Sequence record: NC_062581.1
Strand: one strand, 5' to 3'
DNA length: 64,000 nucleotides
In this document: piece by piece, positions 1,387 to 62,516 of the stretch
How the letters are laid out: every line of letters begins with the position of its first letter
Numbering within the stretch: the first letter of the stretch is position 1
Program-made: the position numbers and the translations under genes
The notes under the pieces: generated by a model
The model's input: the letters and a program-made list of their open reading frames with translations, nothing else
The model's database searches: none
What the model was told of the DNA's origin: nothing

Positions 1387-2217
1387 TTAACGCATGTACG
1401 CAGGACGACGTACTGCTGGGCGACGTTCCCAACCAAGGTTACGGATCAGATCAGTTACATCTAAAGTAGCTGCACTTTCCAAACCTAAACGTTTACGACG
1501 TTCAGCTTCATCTTGCATTCCCCACAGAGTAGTAGGGTTGATGGTCATCTCGTTAGATTCAAAGTTCTCAAGTGCAGGAGAATTGTGTTTACCTGCTACG
1601 TAGATGCCACCTTCACCAACGAAGTCCCAAGTAGAGATTTCACGGGTGTACTTAATACCACGCATTACGTCGTCTTGTGTAATCGAACGTACGGAGCAAT
1701 AAGTATTGATGTGTGGATTGGTAATGGAGTCTTGGAATATTTTTGCGTAAGGACCGTAAGGTTTAACTTCAGCAATAACCAACTTACAAGGACGACCTTG
1801 TTCATCTTTACCATCAACAATAGTCAATGCACGGATGTGCGCACAAACTCGATCATCGTCGATCTTACGAATACGTTGAAGGTACTCGCGATCATCCATA
1901 GGTTTCCGAAACTTACGACCATCAATAAGCAAATCGGTAAACGGTTCAGGATGTTTAAACTCCATATACAGCACGTTCTTAAGCAAACGGCGCATCAGTG
2001 GAGAGTCTGGTGCAAACATAGATACACCAGATGCAGCATCATAAAACATGCCAGCGGAATTGTGGGTGCCATAAGCGCCAACGCAGAGAGTATAATACCC
2101 ATCTGCATCAGGAGTCAGGATACCTTTCTTACCACCGGCAGTCAGAAGACTACCGCTAATACGTACTTGGTTACCGGCTTGCTTCTGGACACCAAAGTAA
2201 TCTTGAGCTGCGCTCAT
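1387..2217 (-). CDS. prohead (head maturation) protease, phiKZ gp175-like
   Basis: LYMEFKHP (catalytic His), RVCAHI, VKPYGP, YCSVRS (catalytic Ser), TWDFV; C-terminal ALE/GLE candidate self-cleavage sites; syntenic with vRNAP genes. Confidence 0.85.
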   Translation of the reverse strand: MSAAQDYFGVQKQAGNQVRISGSLLTAGGKKGILTPDADGYYTLCVGAYGTHNSAGMFYDAASGVSMFAPDSPLMRRLLKNVLYMEFKHPEPFTDLLIDGRKFRKPMDDREYLQRIRKIDDDRVCAHIRALTIVDGKDEQGRPCKLVIAEVKPYGPYAKIFQDSITNPHINTYCSVRSITQDDVMRGIKYTREISTWDFVGEGGIYVAGKHNSPALENFESNEMTINPTTLWGMQDEAERRKRLGLESAATLDVTDLIRNLGWERRPAVRRPAYMR

Positions 2218-42551: not shown

Positions 42552-45112
<2,561 letters not shown>

Positions 45113-48324: not shown

Positions 48325-48717
48325 TTGAAACAAGTTGTACTTATTCCGGTTTTAGATACCGGTACTAACGAGCAACGCAAATTGTTCACTGATGGTACGC
48401 AAATTGATGCGGTTCACAACTGTGAGTTGCTGAATGCGTATCTGGAACGTTTTACTGATTACTTTGTTGTATGTGATGCCATTATTCCTGGTGTCTATCA
48501 ACGGACAATCTATTTTAAAGGTCCAACCGCTTCTATTCAAATCGGTTCGCTGATGGTCGATCTTAAGACGGGGCTTTATACTTTGAAGCTCAGTGATCCC
48601 ATGGCACGTCCAGCTGGTTTGGATATTCATCTCACTGTTAACACTATCCCCAAGGAAAGCGAATGTCGATCCAAGTATCCCTCCGAGCAATGCCACTCGA
48701 TGAAAGCAGTGGCGTAA
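48325..48717 (+). CDS. hypothetical protein (small paralogue family)
   Basis: 130 aa; TTG start after GGAG. Confidence 0.6.
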   Translation: MKQVVLIPVLDTGTNEQRKLFTDGTQIDAVHNCELLNAYLERFTDYFVVCDAIIPGVYQRTIYFKGPTASIQIGSLMVDLKTGLYTLKLSDPMARPAGLDIHLTVNTIPKESECRSKYPSEQCHSMKAVA

Positions 48718-49127
48718 AAGAACTCATTGTACAAGTACCTATTGTTGATTCAGAGTGTTACCAGCTACCTGATATTTTAAAAGTAGACAGTAACCGAATT
48801 AGTTGGGTTTCCCCTGTACAAATCTGTGTACAATACACGGATGTTCCTGCTCCAGGTTTTACATTTACCCTAGGTCCTAATCCAGATGGAAAGGGCCAAT
48901 GGTTATACGTGTGGTATAAATTGCATCGAGTAGCTATAGTTGCTATTGGTGGACCACATGGGCGAATTGTAGTCGGATCAAATTTGGTTGATGAAACTAC
49001 ACCAGCTGATTTAGCTGAAGTTATAAACCAAGTAACCATTGCTTTCCTTGTACACATCAAGGAAACTCATGAAGACGACACTAACACTGGACTTCTCCAA
49101 CAGGGGAGTTGTATCGGGACGGTCTAG
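48663..49127 (+). CDS. hypothetical protein
   Basis: 154 aa in operon. Confidence 0.6.
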   Translation: MSIQVSLRAMPLDESSGVKELIVQVPIVDSECYQLPDILKVDSNRISWVSPVQICVQYTDVPAPGFTFTLGPNPDGKGQWLYVWYKLHRVAIVAIGGPHGRIVVGSNLVDETTPADLAEVINQVTIAFLVHIKETHEDDTNTGLLQQGSCIGTV

Positions 49128-49446
49128 CTCATTAGTACACGTAGGTTCTAAAGACCACACGTTTATTGATGTTGATGTATTGTCAATAACACAAGGGCCA
49201 CAAAACTATGAATCTGAATTGGGTGTCTATAAGGAACCACAAATTGAATTCCCTAATCGGGTAATCTTTACGTTCTTTGACAAAATCCAAAACCAGATGA
49301 TTGCTGAACTAGAAATAGAACTGCAGTTAAAAAGGTTACGTTGGATTAAACCTGTTAGTATGCGCCGCATGACACCATTTCAGACGACTATCGAATTGTC
49401 TCAAGATCCGGCTATCTTGGTGCACTTACCGAGTATAGCTGTATGA
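49069..49446 (+). CDS. hypothetical protein (small paralogue family)
   Basis: MKTTLTL start after AAGGA. Confidence 0.6.
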   Translation: MKTTLTLDFSNRGVVSGRSSSLVHVGSKDHTFIDVDVLSITQGPQNYESELGVYKEPQIEFPNRVIFTFFDKIQNQMIAELEIELQLKRLRWIKPVSMRRMTPFQTTIELSQDPAILVHLPSIAV

Positions 49447-49859
49447 TCGAAGTTACTATAGCGCTGTATGACAAACGCCAAGGAGATCTTGGTGACTTTG
49501 TTAGAGGGACAGAAGACAAGACCTTAGGGAACCCTTATTGGATTACCCCAGGCCTAACTTTTGAAACGGATGGTCAAGCGGTACATGCTTTTAAAACAGT
49601 ACCCACGTTGCATTCTTATGAAGGAATTAAACAATTCCAGATTTGGGACAAGCGCAGTCAGTCCGTTAGGAAATTAGTAGCCACTATTACAATGGATACT
49701 AATACTAACACCTACACGGTAGCATTAGAACCTTACTACCAACGGCGTCGGTTGAACACTACTTTCCATGTACATGGGAATTATAATCGACCACCAGCGC
49801 CTGTGGCATTCCATAACAAAACTCATCACGGCGATTGGGTTTTCGACAACACGATTTGA
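49443..49859 (+). CDS. hypothetical protein (small paralogue family)
   Basis: 138 aa; ATGA overlap with the upstream gene. Confidence 0.65.
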   Translation: MIEVTIALYDKRQGDLGDFVRGTEDKTLGNPYWITPGLTFETDGQAVHAFKTVPTLHSYEGIKQFQIWDKRSQSVRKLVATITMDTNTNTYTVALEPYYQRRRLNTTFHVHGNYNRPPAPVAFHNKTHHGDWVFDNTI

Positions 49860-54113: not shown

Positions 54114-54455
54114 ATGGAACAGCTCAAACAAAAAGAATTCGACGTCTACCCAGATGAGATGACCTATCACAAAGATCGATTCCTGCACCCTAGCCGGAAA
54201 TGTGAACTGGTCCGTTTTGTTGGTGCATTCCATTCGGATCATGTGCTTACAACCGAAGTCGAAGTTATTTGTCGTGGGAATGAACCGGGCAAGGTAGCAC
54301 GGTTCTTGGTTCGTTACGGTGATCAAGAAGCTGATTTGATCATGGATTTGGAAACTTGCCGTTACTCTGCATCTGTTAACATCAAAACTAAACTAGTCGA
54401 TGTGATCCTTGTATTCCGCGCAGAATATCGGGAGGCACCAAAGGAAGCAGTATGA
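54114..54455 (+). CDS. hypothetical protein
   Basis: 113 aa. Confidence 0.6.
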   Translation: MEQLKQKEFDVYPDEMTYHKDRFLHPSRKCELVRFVGAFHSDHVLTTEVEVICRGNEPGKVARFLVRYGDQEADLIMDLETCRYSASVNIKTKLVDVILVFRAEYREAPKEAV

Positions 54456-55396
54456 TTAAAATCGAAGCTACAATACCAACAGGTTATGGCAGTACATCAA
54501 CTCGTTCGGAAGTAAAGATGGGTAAGATGCCTGGTGGTGAACTTCACCCCACAATCCCACCACACCTTGCCTGCTATCCCGATTACAAACTAATCGCAGA
54601 TACACGTAGTGCTGAAGACATCATGGCGATCTTGTTGACTGTTGATGCCCTGCGGCGACAATGTGCTACCAAGAATCCCAGAGTCTCGTTGGAAATTGGT
54701 TACGTTCCTTACGCCCGGCAGGATCGGGTTTGTAATCCAGGGGAATCATTGAGCATTGCTGTTTTTGCTGGATTGATTAACTCGTTGAATCTTGACGAAG
54801 TAATCATTGTTGATCCACACAGTGATGTTACACCTGCATTGATTAACAACGTTACAATTGTTACTCAGACCGATGTGTTGAAACAAACACTGATCCGTGA
54901 GCATTGTGCTATTTATTATCGGGATGTAGCCATTGATCCAAAAGAATGGATTCTGGTTGCTCCTGATGCGGGTGCGGTTAAAAAGACCGAAGCTCTGGTA
55001 AAAGAGTTTGGTTTTAAAGGGATTGTTTATGCAAGTAAATTGCGTGAACTTTCTACGGGCAAAATTGTTAAGACCTCGTTGGACCGTGTTGTCTACGATG
55101 GCACCACTCAACCACATGAATCATTGGCTGACCAGAAAGTGTTGATTGTTGATGACATTTGTGATGGTGGTCGTACATTCCTGGAATTGGCTAAAGTCAT
55201 CCAGCCTTACGAACCCAAGCAACTGGATCTCTTTGTCACCCACGGGATTTTCTCTCAGGGTCAAAAAGAACTTTGTAAACATTTCAACCGCGTAATGTCG
55301 TCAAACACATATCGCATGGACGCCATCACTGATTTTGATAATCTTGAAATCAATGATCTCCTGGCACTTACCGAAATTCGTTTTCCCTACCTGTAA
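54452..55396 (+). CDS. prs: ribose-phosphate pyrophosphokinase homologue (NARP1 Adps-like)
   Basis: MPGGE, GYVPYARQDR, DPHS, VAPDAGA, IVDDICDGGRTF. Confidence 0.9.
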   Translation: MIKIEATIPTGYGSTSTRSEVKMGKMPGGELHPTIPPHLACYPDYKLIADTRSAEDIMAILLTVDALRRQCATKNPRVSLEIGYVPYARQDRVCNPGESLSIAVFAGLINSLNLDEVIIVDPHSDVTPALINNVTIVTQTDVLKQTLIREHCAIYYRDVAIDPKEWILVAPDAGAVKKTEALVKEFGFKGIVYASKLRELSTGKIVKTSLDRVVYDGTTQPHESLADQKVLIVDDICDGGRTFLELAKVIQPYEPKQLDLFVTHGIFSQGQKELCKHFNRVMSSNTYRMDAITDFDNLEINDLLALTEIRFPYL

Positions 55397-55408: not shown

Positions 55409-57238
55409 ATGAACGCACTCAATGCAGCAACAGCAACCGATTTTTACAAACCTGGTCACGGTCCATTGTACCCAGCGGGTACTACCCGTAAGTACTCGAA
55501 CTTCACCCCACGTTCGGCAAAGAACTTTATTCGTTCTAAAAGCTGCTCATCGTTCTACGACAACAAAGTCGTAAACTTTGGTCTGTACGGCAGCTGGCAA
55601 GAACTGGTTGCTTTGTGGGATCGCACGTTCTTCCAGGTTTCCAAAGAGAAAGCCGTCAAAGCCATCAAGCGTCGTTTTGATAATGCTTGCGGCCCAGACG
55701 TTATCTCGGTTGCCCAAATTGCTGCGCTGCATGATGTAGGCTTCCTGCCTGTCACCGTGCTGTCCATCGAAGAAGGTAATCGTGTTAATGTTGGTATCCC
55801 ACTGTGGGTTATCTATAACTCGGAAGAATACCCAGAGCACTACTGGCTGGTTAACTACCTGGAAACCGTAACCAGTTCTTACAACTGGCAATCCATCACC
55901 AATGCCACCATTGCTTACGAATATCGTCGAGTAATGGAACACTGGGCTGAAAAGACTTGCGATAACAATCTGCACGTCAAGATCCAGGGTCATGATTTCT
56001 CGTTCCGTGGGATGCCTGGTCCAGAAGCTGCCGCTCGTTCAAACTCTGGTCACTTGGTTTCGTTCATTGGTACTGACACTATCCCAGCAATCGACTACGT
56101 GGAAGAATATTACCACGCTGATAGCGATAAAGAAATTCTGGGTGTATCGGTTACTGCAACAGAGCACGCCGTGGCAACCGCCAACATCCTGACCATGTTC
56201 AAGCACCGCTTCGATGCTGTATGGGATGCTAACCACGGGGACATGGACATTGTTGGTCCATTGCTGGATAAACTCAAGCTTGAGTGTGAGCGTGATTACA
56301 TCCGTCAAATCATCACCGAAAAAGTAAACAAGGGCATTATCTCCCTGGTTTGCGATTCGTTCGATTTCTGGGGCGTCATTGCAGAAGTACTTCCATCACT
56401 GCGTACTGAAATTGAAGCTCGGATCAAGAATGAAATTGGTCTGGCTAAAGTTGTAGTGCGTCCTGATTCCGGTGATCCTGTTAAAGTCATCACTGGTTTT
56501 AAACTGGTTGAGTACAACACTGCAAAAGAATTCGATGATGCATTGTATAACCTCGGTTGGGAAGCAGTCAACGGCGAAGCTGTCCGGGTAGGTGACAAGT
56601 ATTACGAACTGCGTAACCACGATGCTCCAAATGCATTCCAGGCTCAGTCAACTTACGAAGACTTCCTGGGTCGTGAAATGTCTCGCGCAGAAGCTATCGG
56701 TGCCATTGATAGCCTCTACGAATCGTTTGGTGGACATGTAAACGGAAAGGGCTACAAAGTCCTGAATGAATACATTGGCTTGATCTACGGTGATTCTATT
56801 ACTGTAGAACGTGCTGAACAAATCTTTGAGCGCCTGGAAGAAAAAGGTTACGCTTCTTCTAACGTTGTTCTGGGTATTGGTTCGTTCACTTATCAATTCA
56901 ACACTCGTGATACTTTTGGCATGGCTATGAAAGCCACCGCGTGTGAAGTTAACGCCGAACTGATTGAACTGTACAAAGATCCAAAAACTGCTGCTTCCAA
57001 GAAATCTGCTAAAGGTTTCCTGCGCGTAGTGCGTGATGCTGCTGGTAACTATACACTGGAACAAGAAGTAGAAATGGACTGGAAAGATCTGTTCTACGGT
57101 TCGGGTGAATTGAAACCACTGTGGCACAACGGTAAGTTCCAGCGCGCTGAGTTCTTCCGTGATGCCCGTGATCGTTTGGACCGTACATTTCTGCCTGCAG
57201 ATACTGCTGCGGTAAATGATGGTTTTGAAGTAGCCTAA
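55409..57238 (+). CDS. nadV: nicotinamide phosphoribosyltransferase homologue (NARP1 Namat-like)
   Basis: TDFYKPGH, HDFSFRG, ATEH, SLVCDSFD, VRPDSGDP, IYGDSI, GIGS, RDTFGMAMKAT, KKSAKG. Confidence 0.92.
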   Translation: MNALNAATATDFYKPGHGPLYPAGTTRKYSNFTPRSAKNFIRSKSCSSFYDNKVVNFGLYGSWQELVALWDRTFFQVSKEKAVKAIKRRFDNACGPDVISVAQIAALHDVGFLPVTVLSIEEGNRVNVGIPLWVIYNSEEYPEHYWLVNYLETVTSSYNWQSITNATIAYEYRRVMEHWAEKTCDNNLHVKIQGHDFSFRGMPGPEAAARSNSGHLVSFIGTDTIPAIDYVEEYYHADSDKEILGVSVTATEHAVATANILTMFKHRFDAVWDANHGDMDIVGPLLDKLKLECERDYIRQIITEKVNKGIISLVCDSFDFWGVIAEVLPSLRTEIEARIKNEIGLAKVVVRPDSGDPVKVITGFKLVEYNTAKEFDDALYNLGWEAVNGEAVRVGDKYYELRNHDAPNAFQAQSTYEDFLGREMSRAEAIGAIDSLYESFGGHVNGKGYKVLNEYIGLIYGDSITVERAEQIFERLEEKGYASSNVVLGIGSFTYQFNTRDTFGMAMKATACEVNAELIELYKDPKTAASKKSAKGFLRVVRDAAGNYTLEQEVEMDWKDLFYGSGELKPLWHNGKFQRAEFFRDARDRLDRTFLPADTAAVNDGFEVA

Positions 57239-57244
57239 TTGGTT

Positions 57245-57280
57245 GGGTCCCTTCGGGGACCCTTCCTATTTTCTTTTTTG
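57245..57280 (+). terminator. UUCG terminator
   Basis: GGGTCCC-TTCG-GGGACCC then a T-rich tail. Confidence 0.75.
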
Positions 57281-57296: not shown

Positions 57297-57881
57297 ATGA
57301 GTTGCTGCAATGATTGTAAAAAAGATGAAGGTGAACGAGTGGAGTTTGACGTAGGTATTAACTTCAATACCAATAACTCGTATCATCCAGATTTGATTGG
57401 AAAAAAGATCAACTTCGTCAGCGGCTTTCTAGTAACAGCTGAAGGGGCAATGCCTAAGGGTGGGTTTCAAATACAGTTCCACAGTTATGGTGCCCGTAAA
57501 CACATCAACATTTATCGGAACCGCTTACCGTTTGATGAACTGATGGCTACTATTCAGTTTAATGAAACCACAGGTCATTTTGTGGTACAGCAATTGACTC
57601 GGATAGAGTTTGAAAAAGTTCAATTGATTTTTACCAAAGAGCATGTTGAAGAAGTACAGTATCAAGAACTGGCTCTAGGTGTATACCGTGTACCTAACTT
57701 GGATGCAGGTATTCAACTTAGTGGACACTTGGATATCGATGATTACACTTTAACACAACTTCAAATTGGTCTGCGTAGAATTAATAGCTGGCCAGCGCTG
57801 GTATTGCACCATAGTCAAGAACTCTGTGTATTGTTTACTCCCGAACACCCTACTTGGAAAAATGACGCGTTGTGGCAATAG
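57297..57881 (+). CDS. hypothetical protein (small paralogue family, extended)
   Basis: FHSYGARKHINIY...LMATIQFNETTGHFVV matches 49443-49859. Confidence 0.65.
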   Translation: MSCCNDCKKDEGERVEFDVGINFNTNNSYHPDLIGKKINFVSGFLVTAEGAMPKGGFQIQFHSYGARKHINIYRNRLPFDELMATIQFNETTGHFVVQQLTRIEFEKVQLIFTKEHVEEVQYQELALGVYRVPNLDAGIQLSGHLDIDDYTLTQLQIGLRRINSWPALVLHHSQELCVLFTPEHPTWKNDALWQ

Positions 57882-57904
57882 TGTGTAATTAACGGGAGCA
57901 TTCA

Positions 57905-59326
57905 ATGAAACAATATTTGGCAATGCAAAGGGACATTTTGACCCTGGGTACAGAAAAACAAGATCGCACTAAAACAGGTACGATCTCTTATCCGGGGATG
58001 ATGGCACGTTACGACATTAGTGATAATCGTCTAGCTGTAACATCAACCAAAAAACTTCATCTGAAAACAGGACAAGTTGAAGAAGACTGGATGTTCTCAG
58101 GTGATACACGACTAAAGTTTCTGAAAGATAACAACTGTAACATTTGGGATGAATGGGTATTACCTGGTACGGGTACCTATCGTCTACGTACATTAAAAGA
58201 AATGCGTCGTGTATATGTGCGTAACCATTTTGGCTGGGATGAACCAGGCTTCTTTAATGCACCTTTATCAGAAGAACAAAAGGGCTACTGCAATCTAGTT
58301 CATACCGAAATTGATTTTGACATTTACGAAGTGGTACCCACCACATTGTCTAAACCTCGGCACATGGTACTAGATAAATCAGATCCAAATAAAAATTGGC
58401 TTAACTGGATTAATCCTGACGATCCAATGTGGGTTAAGTTCTACACTGGTTTGAATATCTCCGATCAAGAAGTTGTTGATGGTGAATTGGGTAAAGTGTA
58501 CGGTGCTATGTTTCGTAGCATTGAAGATACACGCATTGTAAAAGATGCGTCAGCCAAAGAAACATTGGCCATGAAAAAACGTGGGTTTACCTTTGAAGGT
58601 GAACTGGCAGGCAAGCGTTCTGTGTTTACTCGGAACATTGACCAGCTGGCAAATCTACTGCATGATCTTGAACATAACCCAGATTCACGTCGTTTGATTC
58701 TTTGCCCATGGAATCCAGCGTATGTGGATGAGCAAGCCTTACCACCTTGCCATTCATTTATTCAATTCTGGACACGTGAAATTCCTGCGGAAGAACGTTA
58801 CAACATTTACGTGAAACGTTTTGAGCGGGAAAAAGCTGAACTGTTTGACGATATTGCTCGCCGGGGGCGGGCAGATATCTACACAGTCCATGTACCGTAT
58901 CCACTAAGTTCTTTCATGCATGTTGAAAACGATGCATTGGTTCGTGATGAATATAAACTACATGCCTATTTGGATGAGCTTAATGTTCCTCGTCGTGGTT
59001 TGACCTGTATCTTCTACATGCGCTCCAACGATAACTTTTTGGGTGCTCCGTATAACCTGACGTTTTATTCGTCGTTGACGCACAAACTTGCTCACCAGTT
59101 TAATATGTATGGTGAAGAGCTAGTGCACATGGTCGGTGATGCACACATTTACCTGAACCATTTGGATCAAGTAAAAGAACAGCAACTGCGTACTCCGGAT
59201 GAAGATATGCCACGACTAAAGATCAAATGTCCTGTAGGTACTTCCATTCTGGATATGACCTTTAATGATCTTGAAGTTGTTGGCTACAATCCACAACCGG
59301 CTATTCCTGCGCCCGTAGCAGTTTAA
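57905..59326 (+). CDS. thyA: thymidylate synthase with two large insertions
   Basis: DRTKTGT, WDEW, LGKVYG, PDSRRLI, LPPCH, MRSND..LGAPYN, DAHIYLNH. Confidence 0.93.
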   Translation: MKQYLAMQRDILTLGTEKQDRTKTGTISYPGMMARYDISDNRLAVTSTKKLHLKTGQVEEDWMFSGDTRLKFLKDNNCNIWDEWVLPGTGTYRLRTLKEMRRVYVRNHFGWDEPGFFNAPLSEEQKGYCNLVHTEIDFDIYEVVPTTLSKPRHMVLDKSDPNKNWLNWINPDDPMWVKFYTGLNISDQEVVDGELGKVYGAMFRSIEDTRIVKDASAKETLAMKKRGFTFEGELAGKRSVFTRNIDQLANLLHDLEHNPDSRRLILCPWNPAYVDEQALPPCHSFIQFWTREIPAEERYNIYVKRFEREKAELFDDIARRGRADIYTVHVPYPLSSFMHVENDALVRDEYKLHAYLDELNVPRRGLTCIFYMRSNDNFLGAPYNLTFYSSLTHKLAHQFNMYGEELVHMVGDAHIYLNHLDQVKEQQLRTPDEDMPRLKIKCPVGTSILDMTFNDLEVVGYNPQPAIPAPVAV

Positions 59327-59334
59327 CGTCATAA

Positions 59335-59360
59335 AGCCTCCCTGCTAGGGAGGCTTTTAT
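59335..59360 (+). terminator. intrinsic terminator
   Basis: AGCCTCCC-TGCTA-GGGAGGCT-TTTAT. Confidence 0.7.
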
Positions 59361-59371
59361 ATTGGAAGATT

Positions 59372-59575
59372 ATGATCACATTAGTTGTTGGATGCATTTT
59401 ACTAGCAATGGGTATCATTGGTGGTGGATTCCTATTATGGGCGTGCATTACCAATTACATCGAGAAAGATGATCAGCTCAATTATTGTTTCGGTGCACTG
59501 ATTAGTTACCTAGTGCTACTTATGGTAATGGTTGCTATTGCCATGGCTGAAAAACAATACCTGATGAACAACTGA
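59372..59575 (+). CDS. small two-TM membrane protein
   Basis: Two hydrophobic helices in 67 aa. Confidence 0.6.
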   Translation: MITLVVGCILLAMGIIGGGFLLWACITNYIEKDDQLNYCFGALISYLVLLMVMVAIAMAEKQYLMNN

Positions 59576-59582
59576 GGTTAAC

Positions 59583-59888
59583 ATGCAAAGTAATCTAATT
59601 GTAGCAACTGTCTACCCAATCACTGGTTGTGATAGTGTTGGGTATGTTCGTGAAATCAAACAAGACGAAAATGGTAAGTATTCTTTTGTCCGTACAAACT
59701 CCGTTGAACGTGCACAGTTGTTCGGCGCGGAAGTTAATGCGGTAATTGATTGGATGCGTAAGGAATGCCATTACGATGGCCTGGACACAATCTATTCATT
59801 TAGCCCATTTCCAGTTAACAACCTAACCCGTATGGTGGAAGTTAGTACTCTTTCAGAACAAGCCGAGGCAAATGATGTTCAGGCGTGA
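59583..59888 (+). CDS. hypothetical protein
   Basis: 101 aa, GAGG SD. Confidence 0.65.
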   Translation: MQSNLIVATVYPITGCDSVGYVREIKQDENGKYSFVRTNSVERAQLFGAEVNAVIDWMRKECHYDGLDTIYSFSPFPVNNLTRMVEVSTLSEQAEANDVQA

Positions 59889-60399
59889 ATTAACCATTAG
59901 TGAACGTTGCAGTTTGATTAACCTGCGCAACGATACACGCATGACCGGGCGGCGTTCCAACGAAGAATTTATCACTCCGGAATCACTGTGTAAGTTTCAT
60001 GATCGCACTGTGGCTGAAATGACTACTTTGTTGGATACCAAGAAAGCCCCTACGCATACGACTAATCCATACCCATTGGTTGAAGTAGTTGAGTGGCTGG
60101 CTAACCAAAACAAATCGTTAGATGCTGCCATTGTTACTGACGATTTGAATTTTAGTTCTACTACACATGGGTATCTGGAATTTTTTCTAGACAAAGCTTT
60201 GCAGGGGGAAATACAACGAGTTAAAAATACCACCATTCGTTTAGATTTTCCAAAACAAGATGCCCCGACTACGACCATGCATCTTTATGAAAACGATATG
60301 TTGATCCGTCGTCCAAAAGACGCTACGACGTATGTATACTTCTGTGCCATACAACCAGTAATTGACAAAGAGACTGTACACGATGCAGATTCAGATTGA
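59872..60399 (+). CDS. hypothetical protein
   Basis: 175 aa. Confidence 0.65.
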   Translation: MMFRRELTISERCSLINLRNDTRMTGRRSNEEFITPESLCKFHDRTVAEMTTLLDTKKAPTHTTNPYPLVEVVEWLANQNKSLDAAIVTDDLNFSSTTHGYLEFFLDKALQGEIQRVKNTTIRLDFPKQDAPTTTMHLYENDMLIRRPKDATTYVYFCAIQPVIDKETVHDADSD

Positions 60400-60817
60400 T
60401 TTAGCTACTAAACGTCCAGGTTATAAAGAAGCATTGGACGCGTTCATAGAACGAAATAAAGTTCATGGTACTTTGGTAGAGTGGGGCAATCCACCTATGG
60501 GTGCCTACAACACACCTGACCGTAAACTGTGGCGCATGAGTCAAGTAAACCCCGGACAAGTCTGTGCTGAACTTGTAGAGCCTGAGTTTGATGCATCTAC
60601 CGGTATATTTACCTTTCAAGTAGCACCTTACGGTCCGCGTCGGGATATGTTTGAAAAGTATGTTAAGGAACAAAAAGATTTGGCCCTTAATAGTCGTATG
60701 ACTGTAGATGGAATGAACGAAGTTGTAGAGCTTCTACAATACAGTCTTGTTCCTATTGCTGAACAAGATGACATGGTCCTACAATCCACACGTAAAGTTA
60801 AAAAGAGTAGCAAATGA
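60383..60817 (+). CDS. prohead-protease-like protein, predicted inactive
   Basis: TLVEWGNP / RMSQVNPGQVCAEL / VAPYGP / LNSR align with LYMEFKHP / RIRKIDDDRVCAHI / VKPYGP / CSVR of 1387-2217. Confidence 0.6.
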   Translation: MQIQIDLATKRPGYKEALDAFIERNKVHGTLVEWGNPPMGAYNTPDRKLWRMSQVNPGQVCAELVEPEFDASTGIFTFQVAPYGPRRDMFEKYVKEQKDLALNSRMTVDGMNEVVELLQYSLVPIAEQDDMVLQSTRKVKKSSK

Positions 60818-61107
60818 AAAAGAAAGATTGGATTGCTGAACTGGGTAAAAACGTAATCATTGGGGCCTGTTTTGTTTGGTGGTTTATTATTCGTTGGTTT
60901 GAACCACGTGAAAACTACAAAACTTTTGCGTTGTATCTGACTGCACGCCCTAACATGGGTTATGCTACACGGAAACTGTTAGAACAATTTAAAGCAACAT
61001 TAAAACCTGATGATGTAGTACGTGTTATTCAATCGCCAGGTTGGTATCCAGATAGTACCACATGGACTTTTTCTTATAAAGACGTAACTTGGAAAATAAC
61101 AGAGTAA
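60814..61107 (+). CDS. small membrane-anchored protein
   Basis: VIIGACFVWWFIIRWF hydrophobic segment. Confidence 0.6.
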   Translation: MKKKDWIAELGKNVIIGACFVWWFIIRWFEPRENYKTFALYLTARPNMGYATRKLLEQFKATLKPDDVVRVIQSPGWYPDSTTWTFSYKDVTWKITE

Positions 61108-61175
61108 GATAATACTCGTATGGTTTATTGATTGCGGTGAGATTGCCGCTTTCAATATCCTACGAGGTCGTTACA

Positions 61176-62516
61176 ATGTCTGAAGCAGAAGTTGTACAAA
61201 AAGAAATCAAAGCAGGTTTTGGTGTAGTAGAAAAAGATCGTAAACTTGCGCGCATCGTTATCATTGACGATGTTGTTCCACACCCTAATGCTGAACGCTT
61301 GGAACTTGCTGTAATTGGTGGTTGGCAACTCTGTGTCAAATTGGGCGAATACAAGAAAGGTGATCGTGCCGTTTATTGCGAGATCGATTCCCTGCTACCA
61401 TTGTCCAACGTAGAACTCTTTGGTTTCCTGGAAGAACGCCGTTCTGATAACCGTCGGGTTGATGGTGTTAACTTTCACCGGCTGAAGACTATCAAACTGC
61501 GTAAAGAAATTTCACAAGGTCTGTTGGTTCCAGTGCCAGCTAAGTTTAAAGATTCTCCGGTTGATACTAACCTGACTCTAGAACTGGGTATCTTGAAATA
61601 CGAACCACGTGCACCAATGGAGCCATCGAACAAAGAAGCTCGCGGTTCTGACTGGTACTCTCGTTTGATTCGTAAGATCATTGGTAACCTGGATGGTTCA
61701 CTGATTCCTTGGCCAGCTCAACTGACTAAGTCTGATCAGGACCGAGTACAGAACAAAACTGTTGCCTTCACCCTGGCTAAAGAAGCCGGTGAAGTATTTG
61801 AAGTTACCTACAAGCTTGATGGTAGCTCGATGACTGTGTTCTGCATCAACGATAAAGGTGTCCGTACTGGTGTGTGTTCTCGTAATTACGAGCTAGGTCT
61901 GGGTGAAGGTAATTGGTCGTTCTCTGAACAGCTGCGTCATTGGGTTGGTGCTTTCCTCATCCGTAACCGTAAAGTAGTTAGCTTGAAGAAAGTTCCTTTG
62001 GAAGAAGGTGGTTTCAAACGTAAACTACATTGGACTGGTATTCACATTCCACAGTGGTTGAAAGGTAGCATTGCTACTGAGAACAACTTCACTCGTTATG
62101 TGAAAGAACATGAAGTTACCAAGGCGCTGCGTGAATACCAAGCGCGTACTGGTGAATTCATTACTGTTCAAGGTGAATTGATTGGTCCGGACATTCAGTC
62201 TAACTTTGAAGGTGTAGACAAACACGAATACCACGTGTTCTCTGTGTACCGTAATGGTAACGAAGAAGTCTTGCCTGAAGAAGCTGAAAAGATTGTTAAA
62301 GAACTGGGTCTTACTTACGTTCCAATCTTTGATCGTGCGTTTGTAATCAAACCAGAACAAGGTGTTAAAGAAATCCTGGAATTGGCTGAAGGTCAACGTG
62401 CTTTCAATCCAAAGAAAGGTACTTACCGTGAAGGTCTGGTATTCAAGTCAAAATCTCGACTGATGTCCTTCAAAGCCATCAGCAATAGCTACCTTATCAA
62501 AAAAGCAGACGAATAA
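61176..62516 (+). CDS. ATP-dependent RNA ligase, DRB0094/Rnl2-like, with N-terminal OB-type domain
   Basis: HPNAERLE..GW, YCEIDSLLP, TYKLDGSS (KxDG), VCSRN, QGELIGPDIQ, REGLVFK, FKAISNSYL. Confidence 0.88.
   Translation: MSEAEVVQKEIKAGFGVVEKDRKLARIVIIDDVVPHPNAERLELAVIGGWQLCVKLGEYKKGDRAVYCEIDSLLPLSNVELFGFLEERRSDNRRVDGVNFHRLKTIKLRKEISQGLLVPVPAKFKDSPVDTNLTLELGILKYEPRAPMEPSNKEARGSDWYSRLIRKIIGNLDGSLIPWPAQLTKSDQDRVQNKTVAFTLAKEAGEVFEVTYKLDGSSMTVFCINDKGVRTGVCSRNYELGLGEGNWSFSEQLRHWVGAFLIRNRKVVSLKKVPLEEGGFKRKLHWTGIHIPQWLKGSIATENNFTRYVKEHEVTKALREYQARTGEFITVQGELIGPDIQSNFEGVDKHEYHVFSVYRNGNEEVLPEEAEKIVKELGLTYVPIFDRAFVIKPEQGVKEILELAEGQRAFNPKKGTYREGLVFKSKSRLMSFKAISNSYLIKKADE

Follow-up and report, generated by a model that had tools for sequence, protein, structure and literature searches.

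Comparison of sequence profiles confirms gp310 of the Pseudomonas phage Psa21 as a true, distant homologue of the S80 prohead protease of the same phage. The protein (MZD04_gp310, YP_010347859.1) is annotated as a hypothetical protein, and is encoded in addition to the full-length protease. It has lost every one of the catalytic triad's three residues, and its gene is maintained by purifying selection. The best explanation, which we consider on balance probable, is that gp310 is a non-catalytic paralogue that acts by binding, and that its partner is probably on the host side. Psa21 is a 305-kb nucleus-forming jumbo phage whose host is P. syringae pv. actinidiae, and megablast matches the region to it with 100 % identity. 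The window is the whole stretch of DNA analyzed here, 64,000 nucleotides in length (sequence record NC_062581.1), and coordinates in the Psa21 record are obtained by adding 186000 to the position in the window. The features discussed are collected in Table 1.

Table 1. Position of gp310, the prohead protease and associated features. Positions are those of the window unless stated otherwise.
Feature	Position	Strand	Remarks
S80 (phiKZ gp175-type) prohead protease	1387-2217	-	276 aa; Pfam Peptidase_S80, E = 7.7e-91
Psa21 protease D198 codon	1624-1626	-	Third triad residue
Psa21 protease S175 codon	1693-1695	-	Catalytic Ser
Psa21 protease H89 codon	1951-1953	-	Catalytic His
Pribosyltran (PRPP-synthetase-like) gene	54452-55393	+	Pfam domain; just upstream of the run
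NAPRTase-family gene	55409-57235	+	Pfam domain; adjacent to the Pribosyltran gene
Terminator-like hairpin	57245-57262	+	7 bp stem with 6 G-C pairs, T-rich tail; directly after the NAPRTase-family gene
Densely packed run of genes on one strand	57297-62516	+	hyp194, thymidylate synthase, three small ORFs, gp310, hyp97, RNA ligase
gp310 ORF	60383-60817	+	ATG at 60383, stop at 60815-60817; 144 aa; locus-2 lineage, PHROG 7478
Glu33 codon	60479-60481	+	Invariant in 32/32 paralogues and in S80 proteases (E86)
Asn36 codon	60488-60490	+	At the catalytic His column (protease H89, T4 gp21 H85); VEWGNPP against MEFKHPE
P37 codon	60491-60493	+	Conserved family-wide
R51 codon	60533-60535	+	Conserved family-wide
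G84-P85 codons	60632-60637	+	Conserved family-wide
Asn103 codon	60689-60691	+	At the catalytic Ser column (protease S175, T4 gp21 S140); LNSRM against CSVRS
R105 codon	60695-60697	+	Conserved family-wide
Ser121 codon	60743-60745	+	At the Asp column, the third of the triad (protease D198); Asp in the other 31 paralogues
Psa21 gp175	133457-133837 of the record, outside the window		126 aa; very diverged locus-1 copy, syntenic with 201phi2-1 gp206

The Psa21 protease is an enzyme of the same type as phiKZ gp175, with which it shares 59.6 % identity. Its H89, S175 and D198 are invariant across an alignment of 18 S80 sequences, and the triad of the corresponding enzyme of SPN3US, gp245, is H77, S153 and D178 (PMC5694885). 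The C-terminal tail of gp245 is self-cleaved and has an inferred role in targeting to the prohead, while phiKZ gp175 exhibits activity in vitro on its own (PMC5694885). In the predicted model of the Psa21 protease there is a confident core between residues 40 and 200, disorder at 1-31 and 203-223, and helices towards the C-terminus.

The relationship of gp310 to this enzyme was proposed in a sequence-only reading of the window, in which four co-linear blocks had been aligned by eye. Such a resemblance is weak on its own because a pairwise BLASTP comparison does no better than E = 0.012 over 53 residues, which is marginal. When the alignment of the paralogues is compared with the 18-sequence S80 alignment, however, hhalign gives a probability of 97.8 % (E = 9.7e-13), and pairs all four blocks exactly as they had been written. 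Residues 1-124 of gp310 match the 147-position profile of PHROG 7478 ('head maturation protease') with E = 2.6e-12, and the Psa21 protease also matches this profile (E = 6e-11). When 1.8 billion representatives were searched exhaustively with phmmer, 20 real short relatives of gp310 were obtained (124-150 aa, with E values from 1e-4 to 1e-26). A hidden Markov model of the resulting family of 21 sequences, run against every ORF of the window, finds the protease with E = 8.7e-10, and 11 of the 21 members individually match Pfam Peptidase_S80 (best E = 5e-9). gp310 itself matches no Pfam family at E values up to 1 and falls below the gathering score of PF20034; in a word-indexed protein search and a scan of viral contigs its sole match was to itself.

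Several other matches were discarded. The protein P0014 (615 aa) gave nine matches to residues 30-74 of gp310, but this is an artefact of tandem repetition and thus a phmmer false positive; we take its repeat motif to resemble a fragment of reverse transcriptase. Two ORFs of the window considered as further copies, at 48642-49124 and 49359-49856, scored between E = 0.14 and 4 with the hidden Markov model, which is not significant.

The predicted structure leads to the same assignment. An AlphaFold2 model of gp310 based on the 21-sequence alignment has a pLDDT of 95.2 and a pTM of 0.85, and its best match in the PDB by Foldseek is T4 gp21 (5JBL; probability 0.99). VIA-align superimposes the model on 5JBL with Z = 10.5 and an rmsd of 2.4 Å over 111 residues (1-126 of gp310 against 40-173 of gp21), compared with 4.9 for the next unrelated fold. 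The herpesvirus assemblins, the proteases of VZV and HCMV, share the fold of the model with Z scores of 3.6-4.8. Structural matches in the ESM Atlas are S77 and S80 proteases, with TM scores of 0.68-0.71. The predicted fold is therefore that of the prohead proteases and assemblins, and is held in common with the S77 enzyme gp21 at a sequence identity of 14 %. Taken with the hhalign comparison and PHROG 7478, it bears out the earlier view of gp310 as paralogous to a prohead protease of the gp175/gp21 type.

The order of strands and helices in residues 2-124 of gp310 corresponds one to one with that in the protease core (residues 42-199), save for a hairpin at 93-106 that is found only in the protease. 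The region of the protease aligned with gp310 by hhalign runs from residue 77 to 201. The N-terminal 39 residues of the protease and its 75-residue C-terminal tail have no counterpart in gp310, which terminates ~20 residues beyond the last strand of the core. As modelled, gp310 is thus a complete protease core domain minus the N-terminal segment and the tail. No solved structure of the paralogue family or of the S80 proteases was found by sequence search. The possibility of a split gene was raised by Ali et al. for SPN3US gp117/gp118 (PMC5694885). In Psa21 the ORFs flanking gp310 (59872-60399 and 60814-61107) were considered as the missing parts of a protease, and were rejected at a probability of <1 % against the S80 profile.

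How much of the active site is left? The sequence-only reading placed Asn at the positions of the catalytic His and Ser. Both substitutions are correct on the profile alignment (N36 and N103), and the third residue of the triad, on which that reading had not remarked, is lost as well, with Ser121 in place of Asp. The triad is therefore absent from gp310 altogether. The residues of T4 gp21 that occupy the first two positions are those altered in the published catalytically dead mutant H85A/S140A (PMC12991175). We surveyed the same positions in 32 paralogues with intact ORFs, of 124-161 aa and 25-40 % identity. His is kept in just two and lost in the other 30. Ser is present in 12, and is otherwise replaced by Ala, Gly, Val, Lys or Asn. 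By contrast the Asp is present in 31 of the 32, gp310 being the sole exception, and gp310 is also the only member of the survey that lacks all three residues. Because it has lost the Asp that the other 31 have kept, gp310 may not share the usual function of the family.

Around the vacated triad the conservation is strong. E33, P37 and R105 are found in every one of the 32 paralogues, G84 in 31 and R51 in 30, and the six residues conserved throughout the family are invariant or nearly so in the S80 proteases too. The motifs common to gp310 and the S80 enzymes are E-x-x-(H)-P, R-x-x-x-x-D/N-x-x-x-V-C-A, P-x-G-P, (S)-x-R and x-D-x. The conserved polar residues frame the former active site and point to a retained cleft, judged from the alignment, although the E/R/R/D set could instead form a structural network of salt bridges rather than a binding site.

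The length of 144 aa given in the earlier reading is confirmed by the positions of the ATG and the stop codon, and the start is supported by homologues that share the initial residue with gp310. There is an overlap of 17 nt between the ORF and the gene upstream, and the G+C content of the ORF is typical for the region. Selection was assessed against a close relative, found in an unrelated sequencing run as a 6.7-kb contig with ~98 % nucleotide identity and the same gene order. Here gp310 differs by six synonymous and two non-synonymous changes, giving pN/pS = 0.09; the binomial probability of at least six synonymous changes among the eight, for gp310 in this one relative, is 0.0017. The neighboring genes on the contig have a similar pattern of synonymous and non-synonymous change. 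With this value of pN/pS the gene is not decaying, but is kept by selection. The earlier description of gp310 as a dead paralogue is thus apt for its catalysis, since the triad is gone, but not for its gene, which is under purifying selection and encodes a protein with a confidently predicted fold.

The sequence-only reading also regarded gp310 as a hidden paralogue, but it is not new, since the family was published in 2017 and corresponds to PHROG 7478. Ali et al. described truncated 'cryptic protease' paralogues in giant phages, including SPN3US gp117, 201phi2-1 gp206 (145 aa), PhiPA3 gp143 and proteins of Erwinia phages (PMC5694885). PHROG 7478 is matched by SPN3US gp117 (E = 9.5e-48), 201phi2-1 gp206 (4.4e-40) and 201phi2-1 gp210 (5.3e-32). 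Like gp310, the cryptic proteases SPN3US gp117, 201phi2-1 gp206 and PhiPA3 gp143 are short, lack the C-terminus of the protease and the catalytic His, and have not been reported in virions. In SPN3US gp117 the Ser and Asp are kept and the His is lost, with another His nearby (PMC5694885), whereas gp310 retains no triad residue. Compared with the S80 enzymes phiKZ gp175 and SPN3US gp245, gp310 has a homologous core fold but no triad, no hairpin and no tail. As a kind, therefore, gp310 is already described, and it is an unusually complete example of triad loss. What is new here is the division of the family into two old lineages, each with a syntenic locus of its own, the second copy in Psa21, the residue survey, and the full loss of the triad in gp310. 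In the literature after Ali et al. we found no paper that assigns a function to the paralogue family.

In a maximum-likelihood tree of proteases and paralogues rooted on T4 gp21, the proteases (support 98/57) are set apart from the paralogues (88/82), with the deepest nodes moderately supported and several long branches. The paralogues form two lineages that coincide with the two syntenic loci. Locus 1 follows genes for a virion-RNA-polymerase subunit and a phiKZ gp124-like protein, and its members are 201phi2-1 gp206, Phabio gp193, Viktualia CDS0414 and SPN3US gp117. The surroundings of locus 2, by contrast, are nucleotide, NAD and RNA-repair genes, including that for RNA ligase. At this locus are found Psa21 gp310, the D6 and RVTF4 paralogues, the tandem Phabio gp341 and gp342, Viktualia CDS0053 and 201phi2-1 gp210; in the tree gp310 is placed within a locus-2 clade of 25 rows with support of 95/89.

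A scan of the whole Psa21 genome with the hidden Markov model finds exactly three members, namely the protease, gp310 and Psa21 gp175. The last matches the paralogue family with an hhalign probability of 89 % (E = 2e-6); it has kept the His (within EYGHP) and the Asp, and has Val at the position of the Ser. The number of paralogues per phage varies between one and three. A scan of 118-140 kb of phiKZ, the syntenic locus 1, found no copy. RVTF4 has a further paralogue at 44113-44565 of its record, far from its locus-2 gene. In Phabio the gp341/gp342 tandem, the locus-1 copy and the enzyme make four genes with the protease fold. In RefSeq or pharokka-style annotation every one of these Phabio and RVTF4 copies bears the name 'head maturation protease'.

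Members of the family appear to stay out of the virion. In the record of 201phi2-1 neither gp206 nor gp210 carries a note of detection by mass spectrometry, while their neighbors, which are virion proteins, do have one. SPN3US gp117 is not listed in those virion tables that are given in text form, and the 'virion' labels in Psa21 derive from homology. No [SAG]-x-E cleavage motif is present in gp310. The notes and tables from the other phages, together with the lack of both a C-terminal tail and a cleavage motif, suggest that gp310 lies outside the virion and the head, with the proviso that virion mass spectrometry would miss a paralogue that is degraded in the prohead.

The earlier placing of gp310 among accessory genes is upheld. 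It is found at a distance from the head module, in a run of nucleotide, NAD and RNA-repair genes. The close packing of the run on one strand suggests a single transcription unit, and the terminator-like hairpin that precedes it probably separates one unit from the next, which carries gp310. A search of sequencing runs yielded none with RNA-seq of a Psa21 infection. The Pribosyltran and NAPRTase-family genes upstream form a pair that we take to resemble NARP1, a phage pathway for NAD+ reconstitution that acts against NAD-depleting defenses. Two other neighbors deserve brief comment. The thymidylate synthase (57905-59326, + strand) has 473 aa and is far longer than a typical ThyA, as are those of D6 (466 aa) and RVTF4 (474 aa). 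The RNA ligase is annotated from position 61176 (446 aa), the length that is also called in a relative, and has a possible TTG start at 61128 (462 aa).

Genes of this region and the protease have diverged to very different extents. Between Psa21 and D6 the identity of the protease is 86.7 %, falling through 72 % for RNA ligase and 54 % for thymidylate synthase to 34 % for the gp310 paralogue and 30 % for the small ORF adjacent to it. The corresponding values between Psa21 and RVTF4 are 75.4, 68, 50, 31 and 26 %. The divergence of the paralogue is thus ~2.5 times faster than that of the protease, although such fast evolution also fits with relaxed constraint.

The evidence can be drawn together as follows. 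gp310 goes back to an old duplication of the S80 prohead protease of chimalliviruses, and is devoid of the N-terminal segment and of the C-terminal tail, to which targeting to the prohead is ascribed in SPN3US gp245. It is a pseudoenzyme, with its core fold intact and the substitutions His to Asn36, Ser to Asn103 and Asp to Ser121, and should be unable to cleave peptides by the mechanism of the family. It would then work as a soluble binding protein in the infected cell, and would not be built into the head. Most likely it binds peptides of the type targeted by the protease, or a partner with which the protease would normally be in contact, in a non-productive manner; we favor this because E33, P37, R51, G84-P85 and R105 are shared with enzymes that cut after Glu. 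The partner would be variable and probably host-side, for example with gp310 as a shield or decoy against immunity that senses the protease. We prefer this to a function in core head assembly because of the faster evolution of the paralogue, its presence in one to three copies and its accessory-gene setting. Inactive caspase-like and rhomboid-like proteins are examples of pseudoenzymes made from proteases. Such proteins resemble gp310 in that a protease was duplicated, and the fold and the residues of the cleft were kept while catalysis was lost.

A decoy, a substrate trap or a regulator had been put forward as possible roles in the sequence-only reading. A role as shield or decoy is made concrete and testable by the triggering of CBASS by prohead-protease activity. 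In T4 the activity of gp21 cuts the activation loop of the CBASS CD-NTase and immunity is triggered, which does not occur with dead gp21 (PMC12991175, a 2026 preprint). The link of gp310 to anti-defense would rest on its gene neighborhood and on this one preprint, which concerns T4 and E. coli rather than Psa21. A bolder proposal, which we regard as quite unlikely, is that the tail-less paralogues of nucleus-forming phages are as a group a form of counter-defense, in which a catalysis-free cleft masks 'tripwire' loops or protease sensors of the host. The activation loops of CBASS CD-NTases would then be occupied, so that heads could mature without abortive immunity, and an arms race would be mirrored in the fast evolution of the paralogues and in their varying number of copies.

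The partner might instead be the protease itself. gp310 could join it as a tail-less, non-catalytic subunit or cap its active site, thereby restraining the protease in the cytoplasm until it has reached the inside of the prohead, comparable to a dominant-negative subunit or T4 Inh. We consider a regulator of this kind unlikely, though worth taking seriously. Since the core fold is the same as that of the enzyme, protease-like interfaces are plausible; T4 gp21 is pentameric, and is inhibited by its own N-terminus (PMC9958956). There would be some use in restraining the enzyme outside the head because phiKZ gp175 is active alone in vitro (PMC5694885), and the activity of free protease can set off CBASS (PMC12991175). 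Yet between Psa21 and D6 the identity of 87 % for the protease against 34 % for the paralogue is odd for a tightly co-evolving pair, so that the conserved protease fits poorly as a partner of so rapidly diverging a protein, and phiKZ is without a copy at the syntenic locus 1. If gp310 does regulate the protease, this would add an extra control step to head maturation in giant phages. We think it very unlikely that gp310 is a transient part of head assembly, a core- or scaffold-like protein taken into the prohead and afterwards removed or degraded, which would thus escape detection in the proteomes of virions. In favor of this, gp310 has its origin in a head protein, head and virion-RNA-polymerase genes adjoin the locus-1 lineage, and T4 has non-essential core proteins that become degraded (PMC9958956). 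But gp310 has neither the C-terminal tail inferred to direct the protease to the prohead nor an S/A/G-x-E site, and is encoded in a run of nucleotide, NAD and RNA-repair genes rather than in the head module. Nor is there an analogue in T4 gp68, a prohead core protein of 141 aa whose gene adjoins gene 21, and which might have been a dead paralogue. It has no similarity to gp21 or to the profile of the paralogues, falls into different PHROGs, and has a sequence that is acidic and then strongly basic, and was therefore rejected as unrelated.

Two further explanations turn on what the loss of the triad means. gp310 may have become a functionless relic that survives merely as an open reading frame, as might be thought from its high divergence between phages, the loss of every catalytic residue and its variable presence. 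This is made highly improbable by the pN/pS of 0.09 against the close relative, by the very confident fold prediction, and by the retention of length and of six invariant residues across 32 relatives at 25-40 % identity. Alternatively gp310 might still be an enzyme, with protease or other hydrolase activity based on non-canonical residues such as Ser104 with His28. Both are present in gp310, Ser104 lying beside the old Ser position; a His near the site was remarked upon in SPN3US gp117 by Ali et al. (PMC5694885), and the relative 201phi2-1 gp210 could be active from the residues it retains. Neither His28 nor Ser104 is conserved, however, with Ser in the column of Ser104 in just 2 of 32, and all three canonical residues are absent from gp310. 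We consider continued catalysis extremely improbable.

As a non-catalytic paralogue that would act by binding, gp310 offers a clean test case for the use of a protease fold in a phage after catalysis has been lost, in a protein that is still selected, and with prohead proteases as triggers of CBASS there is a concrete reason for which a phage might retain a protein of this kind. The annotation of the wider family calls for some care. RefSeq applies the label 'head maturation protease' to paralogues in Phabio, 201phi2-1, Viktualia, RVTF4 and SPN3US, and for many members this is misleading because catalytic residues are missing. 201phi2-1 gp210 stands apart as the only one of the 32 paralogues in which His, Ser and Asp are all present, and by this token it might be an active mini-protease.
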